From: Bugula neritina
Lineage: Eukaryota > Animalia > Bryozoa
NCBI GenBank assembly: GCA_964035545.1
Contig: OZ037772.1
Coordinates: 4,282,233 to 4,346,232, forward strand
Length of the DNA stretch: 64,000 nucleotides
Direction of reading: 5' to 3'
Shown: positions 11,870 through 62,354 of the stretch, one piece after another
Position numbering within the stretch: the stretch's first letter is position 1
How the letters are laid out: every line of letters starts with the position of its first letter
Notes under the pieces: model-generated
What the model was told of the DNA's origin: nothing
What the model saw: only the letters and a program-made list of their open reading frames with translations
Databases searched by the model: none
Made by a program: the position numbers and the translations under genes

Positions 11870-12051
11870 CTACAATAAGCACATCTGATATGATCCTTCC
11901 TACCACCGATGTCAGTCTTCAAACATCTCATGCAGTACACATGGAGACAGGGCAGAGTTCTGGGATCTTCAAGTTTGTTGAAGTACTGCAAGCAGTACCC
12001 ACAGCGATACGAATTGTTTAGTCTTTTTTTCACAACTCTGGATTCTGCCAT
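11870..12051 (-). CDS. TRIM-like gene copy A, first coding exon (RING-HC finger); no other coding exons in the window
   Basis: [20 protein letters not shown]...[10 protein letters not shown]...CAYCR (C3HC4). Acceptor ttacag ending at 12075; phase-2 donor AG|GTGAGT. Same 182-nt length as copies B and C. Confidence 0.85.
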
Positions 12052-13505
12052 CTTGGTTATTTGATAAGGAGATCCTGTAAAATACACATACTCCTAGCAT
12101 AATATTTTACACTACATCTGTGAAGGTTTCCAAATCAAAGACTGACCTATTAAGTTCTAAGTCTAAACCAGACCATTAACAATAAATCATACAAAATAAA
12201 GACATGAAAAATAATGTTAAACAAAGGCAGTTAATAACACTGGTATACATGATAGTCAGCTACAACATGCTGAGCTCACAGCTTCAACTGTCTAACAAAG
12301 GCTGTATTGTTTCCATTGTCATCACTGAATAGGTTTTTGCTGGTGAATCAAACTCCATATACAATAAATATGAAGCAATGTGGTGTGCTTCAGTGACGCT
12401 TTTATTCTACTTCTATTGAACATCACTAATCAAGTGTCTCCAATATGTAGAAGAGAAGTGAAGCACAATACCGGTGAGTTATGTATTACATGTATGAACA
12501 ATTAAACAGCAGAATTGGGCTCAGCTGCTTATCCCCTCATTCAGTGTTATGTATTACTCTGTATGACAAACAGCACTCACTTTCAGCAGCTTACAGTAAT
12601 TAGGCCTAAAGTGATTTAAACTCATAATACACTCCTTAATAAACTTATTTTATAAGCATCCTGTAATCAGTTTATTTCTGTATGTACTCATATTCTAGTA
12701 GCCTTATATATACTATATTCATATTCAAGTTATATTCCACAACACTATAATTGTTTATTCTTATTTCACCTTGAGATACAAAGCCACTCTGCATTTGTAT
12801 AAACTATAACTTGGGGTTCAATTTGTCATACTATTATATATAAACTAATAAATGTGCATGATGTCTGTGTAACTTTTAGGTATATTATAATCTATACTAA
12901 ACAACCAACTTTGAAAATTTTCTTGCAAATATTTGAACCTCTGTTTATCTATTATAGCCAATGAAGACTCAACCAAAAGCAATACAGGTGCTGATAATTA
13001 CTAAAATATGTTGTGTAATGCTCAAAACTCTTCTGCATTAAAGAAATAATATATTTGAAGAATAATTTGTTTGATCAACAAGCATAAGATTTTCCAATGA
13101 AGACTCAAGTGATCCTAGAGATGAGTACCTTGGGAAAATCAGCTAAATAAGATGATTAAACTGAATAGTTATGCAATTATCATTATGATGTTAGAAAAAA
13201 CTTGACAAATGGTGGCTCACTTCACAGTATACATAATAGATGCAGTCTTTATGCCCCAGAATATGTAGAATATGTACAATAACTTGTGTTATATATCTTT
13301 AGCATACATTCACAAAATGCATCAAGTAAAAACTCTTATGTTTGATTAATAAACATAAGATATTCCCTTGAAGACACAAATGATGTAGAGATGAGTACCT
13401 TGGGAAAATTAACTAAATAAGATAATGTACTGAATAGTTATGTAATTACCACATCATCAGCCATTACATTAATATGAACACTTATAATGTGGTTATATTA
13501 CTCAC

Positions 13506-13620
13506 CTCAAATGTTGAACTGATATTTATTACTTTATATGTTGTCAAGAGCTGCTGGGAGACTTTGTACACAGTAAGCTGGATGACTGTCAAATGATGAC
13601 TACTCAGTCATATGACCTGC
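13506..13620 (-). promoter_or_regulatory. Putative promoter / non-coding first exon of copy A
   Basis: Block conserved with 38350-38460 and 59070-59184, ending in a GAG|GTGAGT donor. Confidence 0.55.
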
Positions 13621-14016
13621 ATTTATTTAGGTATAGAAATTGATTATAGAACCTGAATATTGTGTTTTACATTCCTTACCTGAAAAATCAATTTAACTAG
13701 CATTCACAGCAGATATTTTCAATAACCATTCTACTGTTATTCAATGCAGGATAAACAAAAGAAACCTATATACATGTGAATAACATCTTGTTAGTAACAC
13801 AATATTTCTATAGAGTCTATATAATGATGTATATGAGTATAATGAGTTTGATGTTTTACATTCCACTTATTCATCAGATGGAAGGATTTAAACAATCAAT
13901 TAAAATAGCATATTCACAGTGGAGACTTGGAATACTGATATTCGATGGGGAATAAACAAAAGAGATTACTTCAAGTAAATAGCATTAACTTAGTAATACA
14001 ATATGAGTTGATATTC

Positions 14017-59184: not shown

Positions 59185-60452
59185 GTGAGCAAATAATGGT
59201 ACCATCAACATTCATATTGATTTATTAGGGAATAATATAATAACTAAATATCTATTTATGTACAAAACCATTTCATTTAGTTAATTTTCTTCTGCAGTAC
59301 TCATTTTAACTTCACTTGTGTCATCAAGAAAGAACTCTGTGTTTGTTGGTATATAAACTAGGAGTATCATTACTCAAACATAATTATTGTTTCTTCAATA
59401 TGGAACAGTGTTGGGCATTATAACATAGATCCTGGTAACTTTCAGAAACTGTTGCTATTGGTTAAACACTCATTGACTAAATAAATGTAGTTTTATATAT
59501 CTAAAGATTTTTTCTAAACGATTGTTTACTATAAATTGTTGCCCAGCTACAAGTTACACCCACACCGTGTGTAGCAGCAGGTGATGGCGAGACAAGTTGA
59601 AACTCTGATACTTGTCTTCCTTGTCATAACACATTGAGTATACAGAGCAGAACACTTTGACTTGTTTAACTAAACTAGTTAAAACTAGTTTAATAAACTC
59701 TTTTTACATGTATAGCGAGTCTGAAAAGTGTTAATGCACTGAAATTCCAAGAAGAGACTTGACAATACATTTGTTTCTAATGTAGCTTTTGCACCTTGAC
59801 AAAACTTCCCAAAATGCAGCACTTCTTGACATTTTCTGCTGTATTCATGTTTGAGTAAAATTGAAAACTCAAACTAATAATATTTTCATTTTATTTGGTG
59901 CCAAAAGTTTAGCATTATACTTTTTTCTCTAGGTTAAGCATTCACTTACATTAACAATAACAATATAGTTTATACAAGTGAAAGGTGGTCCTAATGAATA
60001 ATAGAATAGTGTATCTCCTGATGGAAGTGAAATGAAAACAATTATAGTAGCACTGCATATTCAGGATGAATATATTATTTGAATATTAGGGTAATTTACA
60101 ATTATACAAGATATGGGTACTTAGTAAATTAAACAAATTATATAAATAGTATAGTATTAATAATAGAGTGTATAATATAATACGAGTATTTTAAGTTCAA
60201 TACACTTTCAGGTTGCATAAGCAGCTGCCTTGAGGTGCTCCAGATGACACAGAGTGTTACATAACTCACTGGTATATTCATGTTTCAATTTGCCTCTAAA
60301 GTTTCCTTTATAATTTCACGATTTTTAGTCACAAGTTCAATTTGGCCGAGTTGCATTGCATTCCGCATCGGTATTGTAGTGGGTTCATGGAATGTATAAA
60401 TTGCACTGTGTGGGTTATTGAGACTTGGCACAGGGGAGTGTATCCTTTTGTA

Positions 60453-60825
60453 TGTGAGAGTGTTAGGGTAGTCAAGAGATGATAATTCAATAGAATATAA
60501 TCGAATGTTTATTGATACCAATTAGCAATCCAAGCAAAAAGTTACATACCTATAGCAAAAGTGTTACATCAACTAAAAGAAAACTACTACTAAAACAAAA
60601 TTAAGTTAAGTTGGCACAGCTATTCAACATCGTGGTGCTGGCGCAGCAATAACTATTTATAGCTGGGCAGCACCTATTACTGGCGTATTGTCCTCTATAA
60701 AACAAATCCAAGTTGGGTTACTAGCCAATGACATTGTCAGTGCGTGAGGTTGTAGATCCACAGAATCATTCATGTGGTGTTTTTAATCTCCAGGCTAAGC
60801 GTGTGAATGCCTGAAATCCCTTACA
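60453..60825 (-). mobile_element. Possible solo LTR
   Basis: Minus strand tgtaaggg...TATAAATA...AATAAA...ccctaaca/ctctcaca. Lies in an insertion absent from copies A and C. No clean TSD. Confidence 0.4.
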
Positions 60826-61365
60826 ATATGATTTCACCAAGTTTCAGTAAGATTATAAAGGGGTACTCAGGTGAGTGTCAATAACTGAAACTCGGTGCTT
60901 TTTTGAACAGCTTCAAGTAACAACAGAATTGGATAGCAGTGTTTAAAAGTGTTAAAATAACGTGTTCACTGAAACACACAGTTTTGTTTCATAATTTTCG
61001 TATATGAAACTTGATCGAATAATGAACAATGAAACTGATACAGGCTCTGTTAGACAGTTGAAGCTATGAGCTCAGCATACTGTAGCTATTTAATGCAGCT
61101 TACTATTTGTGTACCAGAGTTATTACTAGTCGTTGTGTAACATAATTTTATATCATCTTGTGTGAGTTGTTATACTAGCCTTTGGTTAACATAACTTATC
61201 ATTTCTGTCTGTGTGGTTTGTTGTTGATGTGGTTAGGATTTGGAACTTAATCTAGGTCAGTCCTTAGTTGATTTATGATAAAGAATAACTCTTGATAGAT
61301 GTACTGTTAAATCTTATTATGCTAAATATATGTCTTTTAAAAGGTTAGCAACTCAAATAGCCAAA

Positions 61366-62354
61366 ATGGCAGAATTCAGAGTTGTAAAAAAAAGCTAAAC
61401 AATTTGTATCGCTGTGGGTACTGCTTGCAGTACTTCAACAAACTTGAAGACCCCAGAACTCTGCCCTGTCTGCATGTGTACTGTATGAGATGTTTGAAGA
61501 CTGACATCGGTGGTAGGAAGGATCATATCAGATGTGCTTATTGTAGGTGAGTTACAGTACATATTGTAGGTGAGTTACAGTACATAATGTACCATCGTGA
61601 CTTACATTTTCTTTTCTCACTCTTATTATCTAGGAGTTGTCTGATCTGTATTTTTCAAGAGCCAACATTGAATACTTTATGTGACCTTTGGTAAACAAAA
61701 GTTTTTGAGTGGGTGTAGCTCATTTGATTAGGTAGACAGAATGATTGTTTTATGTAGATTTATATTTAGTAAAATTAAGAGAAAGTCAATTTCTGGTAAT
61801 CTTAGAGTATATCTTACATTATGTAATATATCCTAGATTATGTAATATATCTTATATTATGTGATTATATATGGTATATTACGTAATATATCTTATATTA
61901 TGTAATTATTTATAATTATATTTGCAGAGCACTAAGTTTTTATGTTGTTTTTATGAGTCTCTCTTTGTTGTCATTTATTTTGAAGTAAACAGTAGAGCAG
62001 CTTAGTGAATTATTCAATACTGATTGGTAGAACTTTATTACTTTCAACATAATCTGCTTAGTTTCATTTTAAAAGGAAGTCTTTCTGAGTTAAAAATATA
62101 TTAGAATTTTTTTGTATTATTATTGCATTGTTATTGAATTATTGAATATATTTCAGTTATTGTATTATACTAGAAAGTAAAAATTTGCATGTAGTTGTGT
62201 CAGCTGTATTCTTTTTGAAGGTGAACTGATGGTAACAATTCCCAGAGAAAGTTTCGGTGTGAATGACCAGGTGTATGCTATTGCTGTGTATAACAGAGAC
62301 ACAGTGTTTCTAGCATGTCAAGATGGACTGAAGAGATACACAATAAAATGCTAA
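61366..62354 (+). pseudogene. TRIM-like copy D pseudogene: frameshifted RING exon (61366..61546) plus last exon (62221..62354); exons 2-6 missing
   Basis: RING exon is 181 nt rather than 182 (gta aaa aaa agc TAA). Only 674 bp separate it from the last exon, and the phases are incompatible (2 vs 1). Confidence 0.85.
61808..61905. repeat. ~5 x 19-bp minisatellite (tatatcttatattatgtaa)
   Basis: Tandem copies at the copy D deletion junction. Confidence 0.8.

Follow-up and report, generated by a model that had tools for sequence, protein, structure and literature searches.

A large family of predicted TRIM-NHL-type E3 ligases with one diversified propeller face in the bryozoan Bugula neritina

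Introduction

What is the role of the RING-encoding genes that lie close together in a retroelement-rich part of the Bugula neritina genome, and do they form a repertoire of recognition proteins? We analysed a stretch of 64,000 nucleotides (nt) (assembly GCA_964035545.1, contig OZ037772.1, positions 4,282,233 to 4,346,232, forward strand; hereafter, the window). An earlier note on this DNA had described four paralogs in about 50 kb and proposed a locally expanding family of TRIM-like E3 ligases, in which a conserved part made of RING, B-boxes and coiled coil (RBCC) carries a variable beta-propeller in place of B30.2 and serves as a lineage-specific recognition repertoire.

Genes B and C and their family

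Self-alignment and exon mapping gave four related pieces within positions 11870-62354 of the window. As the earlier note had stated, two of them are complete and share one exon architecture: gene B (plus strand, 20452-35827) and gene C (plus strand, 40001-53723) both have seven exons with identical phases, every intron is GT-AG, and the spliced translations are open frames of 620 and 621 amino acids, respectively. The order of domains in both is RING, a candidate B-box1, B-box2, a putative coiled coil and a predicted NHL-type propeller, and no room is left for a filamin domain. The other two pieces are present as described but are not genes. A is a RING exon alone, D is a deletion remnant with a frameshifted RING exon and a last exon, and both are dead copies.

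The window is part of a contig (C8) of a 216-Mb genome. When paralogs were collected genome-wide, the idea of a local four-gene cluster had to be rejected, since about 100 close paralogs were found, most of them spread over 4.7 Mb of C8 and the others on further contigs. Specifically, at least 98 matches to nearly the whole of exon 6 reached 50% identity, at least 64 of which were within the first 4.7 Mb of C8 and others on C1-C6 and C9; at least 102 RING exons were found at 65% identity or more, both counts being lower bounds. Among these RING exons, 53 had an equal score, and the proteins of the 14 retrieved from those 53 were all identical. A second cluster of about 30 copies with the same architecture is located on C8 at 6.6-7.2 Mb and 9.3-9.4 Mb, and shows about 25% identity to the B/C-type family in the propeller and 35-45% in the RING and B-box2. 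Close relatives outside this genome were all in JGI and Logan contigs, and no alignable relative outside the lineage was found in 1.84 billion representatives (19 matches) or by profile search.

Six orphan exon 6 fragments are also present in the array (C8 263236, 456611, 739516, 2726004, 3732588 and 3858898). They cover only residues 30 to about 70-130 with 50-68% identity, and are possibly pseudo-exon relics or conversion donors for the first variable loops. An exon 6 match on the minus strand at C8 4360606-4361310, 14 kb past the window, is probably a further remnant at the array edge; no exon 3 match was found between it and the next gene.

Selection on one face of the propeller

Codon models were fitted to 30 propeller exons, which were picked by likeness to B from 60 loci retrieved from the genome, with our own GY94/F3x4 code and branch lengths scaled from the IQ-TREE fit. 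For exon 6, twice the log-likelihood difference (2dlnL) was 669 for M2a against M1a, with a dN/dS (omega) of 12.2 on 7.7% of codons, 685 for M8 against M7, and 651 for M8 against M8a. In the main clade, the 2dlnL was 564 on the maximum-likelihood tree, 805 on a star tree and 549 on the intron tree. Exon 7 gave a 2dlnL of 78. On the other hand, the RING exon had an omega of 0.08 and a 2dlnL of 0, and neither exon 5 (omega 0.50, 2dlnL 0) nor exon 4 (omega 0.53, 2dlnL 3.2) was significant. Thus, the per-domain comparison suggested in the earlier note, run on the family, points to strong diversifying selection on propeller codons and little or none in the RING and coiled-coil exons; the coiled coil and the propeller core show purifying or neutral change. 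About 21 codons were called as selected, 17 in exon 6 (passing 0.95) and 4 in exon 7. Main-clade paralogs differ at 13 of the 17 exon 6 sites on average, and B and C at all 17.

We also quantified diversity without a tree. It was 0.50 at the first and second positions of selected codons, 0.046-0.056 in introns, 0.052 at fourfold sites, and 0.008 at those fourfold sites that lie no more than two codons from a selected one. Pairs having the same amino acid at a selected codon showed a silent difference in only 4% of cases. Because silent sites beside the hot codons are not raised, the pattern is not that of a mutation hot spot. Among the 25 most variable columns of 42 proteins taken from other samples were 15 of the 17 exon 6 sites (p 4e-11).

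When the top face of the propeller was defined as the da and bc loops, as in PMC4015489, 16 of the 17 exon 6 sites mapped to this predicted face (105 positions), one was mid-strand and none was on the bottom (91 positions; p 3e-5), in agreement with the location that the earlier note had expected. After removal of the 17 sites, the proportions of nonsynonymous (pN) and synonymous (pS) differences were 0.103 and 0.026 in the remaining top loops, and 0.025 and 0.076 in the bottom strands. Selected sites were enriched in Trp, Tyr and Phe (23% versus 6%) and in Arg (15% versus 3%), with acidic, basic and aromatic residues freely interchanged.

Domain identity

The RING of B exon 1 was recognized by PF00097 (25.1 bits, cut-off 21) and PF13445 (28.5 bits, cut-off 25.2), and the eight zinc ligands of the C3HC4 type are all in place; its omega of 0.08 is consistent with predicted E3 ligase activity. 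B-box2 matched PF00643 with an E value of 8.6e-5 and 23.1 bits on the single exon, just below the cut-off of 24.1. Note that its last His is encoded in the following exon, and that eight candidate Cys/His ligands are present in both B and C. The B-box1-like motif in exon 2 had no Pfam match; its fourth Cys is replaced in 16 of the 16 copies seen, and its second His is not constant. Exon 4 gave weak Pfam matches only, to unrelated helical families, and exons 4-5 are helical in look. With their RING and B-box2, B and C are predicted TRIM (RBCC) proteins.

For exon 6, the Pfam NHL score was below the curated cut-off (12.4 bits against 20 for B, no match for C), and no propeller family was named by Pfam, NHL being missed because the propeller is too diverged for the model. 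Among solved structures, sequence matches were only to the NHL-derived Pizza proteins (Pizza6) and PknD, and those Atlas matches that have a family were mostly in NHL clusters. The AlphaFold model of C exon 6 had a predicted local distance difference test (pLDDT) score of 85 and 19 strands. Its 12 best structural matches in VIA were all TRIM-NHL proteins (Thin, TRIM2, TRIM71, Mei-P26 and TRIM3), with Z of 18.3-18.9, a root-mean-square deviation of 2.6-3.7, about 200 aligned residues and 9-15% identity. Other NHL-type propellers were within 1 Z of these matches, and Foldseek by itself placed mixed propellers at the top. The model and its best matches argue that the exon 6 domain is an NHL-type propeller and that the proteins have the TRIM-NHL architecture of class VII / subfamily C, which supports the earlier proposal of a propeller instead of B30.2. 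Exon 7 probably completes blades 5-6 and would supply the sixth blade, beyond the modelled C exon 6. Since the domain is a propeller and not B30.2 (PRY-SPRY), the family does not belong to finTRIM/TRIM5 of class IV.

Mosaic ancestry of B and C

Recomputed amino-acid identities between B and C agreed exactly with those given before: 55/63 (87%) in the B-box2 exon, 59/68 (87%) and 84/93 (90%) in the coiled-coil exons, and 145/228 (64%), without indels, in exon 6. The claim of a conserved RBCC part held for the RING and coiled coil across the family, but not uniformly for this pair, whose RING and B-box1 exons are 78% and 77% identical, with dS saturated in the RING. In B-C exon 6, dN was 0.23, dS 0.47 and omega 0.49, and dS in exons 4-5 was 0.24-0.30. 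Because dS is raised in exon 6 relative to exons 4-5, part of the 64% reflects older ancestry, and we rejected the B-C dN/dS as evidence of selection. A low dN/dS together with high dS in exon 6 is what the earlier note had named as speaking against its proposal; the B-C pair alone shows it, but the 30 paralogs show selection.

The exons of both genes are of mixed origin. In exons 1, 3, 4 and 5, the nucleotide identity of C to the main clade is 94-97%, but it drops to about 80% over the stretch that runs from intron 5 to the end of intron 6. In B, exons 3 and 5 are of the main-clade kind, while the RING and the last exon belong to a different subfamily type. The paralog L029 switches type within exon 5; L034-L035 are mosaic as well. 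B and C are thus atypical mosaic, older-branching copies at the array edge, and in the history of the family, subfamilies have exchanged exons.

Three JGI contigs from sample 3300003318, another colony's metagenome, were used for comparison, two of which match B and C at 92-96% nucleotide identity. At the 17 sites, the B-like and C-like copies on them encode the same amino acids as B and C, apart from one stop. Therefore, it is the paralogs and not the alleles that are diverse. This pattern speaks for birth-and-death evolution and makes a classical allorecognition locus less likely.

Annotation of the window

Coordinates of all exons are listed in Table 1. Among the matches listed, neither exon 3 nor exon 6 had one on the minus strand downstream of copy A. 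In copy D, exons 2-6 are deleted, and a C-like intron 1 is fused to a B-like intron 6, as examined by self-alignment (39635-40443 with 60940-61770, 34334-34535 with 61887-62088, and 35678-36143 with 62208-62684).

Table 1. Exons of genes B and C and of remnants A and D (window positions)
Feature	Positions	Strand	Evidence
Copy A, orphan RING exon, main-clade type	11870..12051	-	exon mapping, nearest relatives
B exon 1, C3HC4 RING, C2/C9 subfamily type	20452..20633	+	Pfam, nearest relatives
B exon 2, linker, then B-box1-like motif with a substitution at the fourth Cys ligand	20915..21095	+	
B exon 3, B-box2	21292..21481	+	PF00643
B exon 4, putative coiled coil	31650..31855	+	exon mapping; weak matches to helical families
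B exon 5, putative coiled coil / return helix	32671..32950	+	exon mapping, paralog comparison
B exon 6, most of predicted NHL-type propeller	33234..33920	+	exon mapping, genome matches
B exon 7, propeller end and stop, C2 subfamily type	35691..35827	+	exon mapping, relatives
C exon 1, RING, main-clade type	40001..40182	+	exon mapping, relatives
C exon 2, B-box1-like	49543..49723	+	exon mapping
C exon 3, B-box2	49912..50101	+	exon mapping
C exon 4, putative coiled coil	51101..51306	+	exon mapping
C exon 5, putative coiled coil	51727..52006	+	exon mapping
C exon 6, predicted blades 1-4 plus the first three strands (A-C) of blade 5; 17 positively selected positions; segment of older lineage	52313..52999	+	model, site models
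C exon 7, predicted last blade; 4 positively selected positions in family	53584..53723	+	exon mapping, site models
Copy D RING exon, 1-nt loss near start, 181 nt, frameshift	61366..61546	+	exon mapping
Copy D exon 7	62221..62354	+	self-alignment, exon mapping

A BEL/Pao long terminal repeat (LTR) retrotransposon occupies 2838-11305, with a single open reading frame (ORF) of 1944 amino acids at 4460-10294 (Pao peptidase, reverse transcriptase and integrase zinc finger). Its LTRs (2843-3654 and 10489-11300) are 99.6% identical and the target-site duplication is GGGTG; the insertion is very recent. It sits in intron 1 of remnant A, where intron homology picks up again at 2465-2620. Decayed LTR-retroelement pieces (reverse transcriptase, RNase H and integrase SH3) are found at 23800-30600, 43000-47600 and 54600-56900; such pieces enlarge intron 3 of B, now 10.2 kb long, and intron 1 of C, now 9.4 kb, and others follow C. 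Long microsatellite-type repeats with spurious ORFs lie at 14000-14950, 37600-38170, 49030-49370 and 54000-54400. In addition, a kB-like 10-mer is found about 780 nt into intron 1 at 10 main-clade loci (L041, L045-L046, L049-L053, L056 and L058), and a similar site at window 2609-2620 has the matching offset in remnant A when the Pao element is discounted. Since the 10-mer is shared by descent, it is no evidence of function.

Discussion

We consider it probable (roughly 0.6) that B and C belong to an array of about 100 putative E3 ligases of TRIM-NHL type, which evolves by birth and death and would act as a germline repertoire of intracellular recognition proteins against evolving invaders such as viruses or other intracellular parasites. 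The architecture, the copy number, the near-invariant RING and the single diversified propeller face are directly supported. The core idea of the earlier note, a lineage-specific recognition repertoire, is borne out at the level of the family by the constant RING and coiled coil, the selected top face and the restriction to one lineage.

From established TRIM biology, the coiled coil would form an antiparallel dimer displaying two propellers, and the top face of each paralog would bind its own variant of a foreign target that evolves fast, namely a protein or RNA of a virus or retroelement. Clustering on this target would activate the common RING, which might ubiquitinate the target for degradation or build signalling chains. 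Gene duplication, point substitution and the swapping of exons across subfamilies would create new specificities, and copies would often be lost. A broader proposal, which we hold to be slightly favoured, is that 100-150 TRIM-NHL ligases make up an undescribed invertebrate repertoire of intracellular immune receptors, with the top face as an antibody-like, germline-diversified paratope against viruses or retroelements, propeller exons exchanged between subfamilies, and the TRIM5/finTRIM design evolved independently on an NHL scaffold.

Several points weigh against a repertoire directed at invaders. It is known here from sequence and a structure model, so that its ligand, E3 activity, expression and induction are putative. 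The codon models were self-implemented with site calls by naive empirical Bayes, the face was assigned by secondary-structure topology rather than atomic coordinates, and the exons analysed were 30 of about 98, selected for their likeness to B. Furthermore, half of the exon 6 codons fit an omega near 1 and exons 4-5 are weakly purified (0.5), and hence decay of some copies is possible. In the JGI sample, the B-like copy (L061) and the C-like copy (L066) are both broken in exon 6, by a 56-nt gap and a stop at codon 67, respectively, although each is a single metagenome contig in which assembly error is possible. Lastly, the 1.5 kb upstream of each of 32 RING exons contained no NF-kB-like site (0/32), and the idea of an upstream NF-kB site was rejected.

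The strongest alternative, which we regard as unlikely, is an endogenous target. The array would then be directed against transposons and bind LTR-retroelement capsids as TRIM5 does, or transcripts by sequence-specific RNA binding like that of Brat and LIN-41, as an RNA-level counterpart of KRAB zinc-finger arrays. The selected face corresponds to the RNA-binding top face of the Brat propeller (PMC4015489), Arg and aromatic residues are enriched at the selected sites, and the window is rich in LTR elements, including one with nearly identical LTRs. However, acidic, basic and aromatic residues replace one another freely at these sites, a pattern that suits the binding of a protein or glycan at least equally, and elements insert into any gene-poor array.

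Two further explanations seem improbable to a similar degree. Fungal incompatibility employs diversifying intracellular propellers, and in a colonial animal such as Bugula, the propeller set of a colony could read a polymorphic intracellular partner and trigger rejection in allorecognition or symbiont control. Bryozoans show allo-incompatibility (PMC8195603). However, the nearest copies of another colony are unchanged at the 17 sites except for one stop, and the architecture has no signal peptide or membrane segment. Alternatively, diversification could be internal to the host, the proteins being substrate receptors for a host family, for example a reproductive or developmental one, with no invader involved. 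Canonical TRIM-NHL proteins are indeed developmental regulators, but without a conflict it would be unusual to see an omega of about 12 across 100 copies that are often lost, and no alignable relatives of the family were found outside a few samples. An artefact of local hypermutation, gene conversion or relaxed constraint, for which the mosaic genes and the raised B-C exon 6 dS could speak, is very improbable and was largely refuted, since silent change is not raised in the hot codons or next to them, no recombination signal was found within main-clade exon 6 (PHI-like p 0.69), the selection signal holds on star and intron trees and in independent samples, and hypermutation or conversion would not restrict change to one face.

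Comparison with known systems

TRIM arms races are documented almost solely for vertebrate B30.2 proteins, and TRIM-NHL proteins are regarded as regulators that are few and conserved. TRIM expansions also appear to occur in other marine invertebrates. In open-access papers, we found no description of a bryozoan or Bugula TRIM/NHL protein and no TRIM or immune-receptor study for the phylum Bryozoa, and the run accession SRR4020080 did not occur in papers. An array of 100 genes in which the NHL top face has an omega of about 12 suggests that the sensor-ligase design was invented independently here. With about 21 putative specificity residues mapped, and with many natural propeller binders joined to one constant RING, the ligand question becomes directly testable.

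The finTRIMs, of which zebrafish has 84 clustered genes (PMC2657112), and TRIM5 resemble the present family in being large and clustered, with a near-identical RING/B-box part, exon shuffling and positive selection on the ligand face, a combination observed here as well. They differ in that their C-terminal domain is B30.2/PRYSPRY, whereas the proteins here are from an invertebrate, carry an NHL propeller by prediction, and have at most a putative link to virus induction or restriction.

TRIM-NHL proteins share the RING, B-box2 and NHL-type propeller and, by prediction, the B-box1 and coiled coil, and gave the best structural matches; TRIM32 lacks a filamin domain, as do B and C. However, the identity is 9-15% and Pfam NHL was missed, and the canonical proteins are few and conserved, in contrast to about 100 copies with a hypervariable top face here. 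Canonical TRIM-NHL proteins number 3-5 per genome (PMC4015489), and Marin subfamily C comprises TRIM2, 3, 32, 56, 71, Brat, Mei-P26 and Thin/Abba (PMC3503706). Within this subfamily, TRIM56 is reported to have an antiviral role dependent on RNA binding (PMC6623546), but TRIM56 is a single gene and not a repertoire. A further parallel is the Branchiostoma DED-TRADD-N-WD40 family, an expanded variable-propeller family proposed as an invader sensor (PMC8195603). Both families are lineage-specific expansions in which a constant effector end is joined to a variable propeller; theirs combine death-like adaptors with WD40, whereas those of B. neritina would combine an E3-type RING with NHL.

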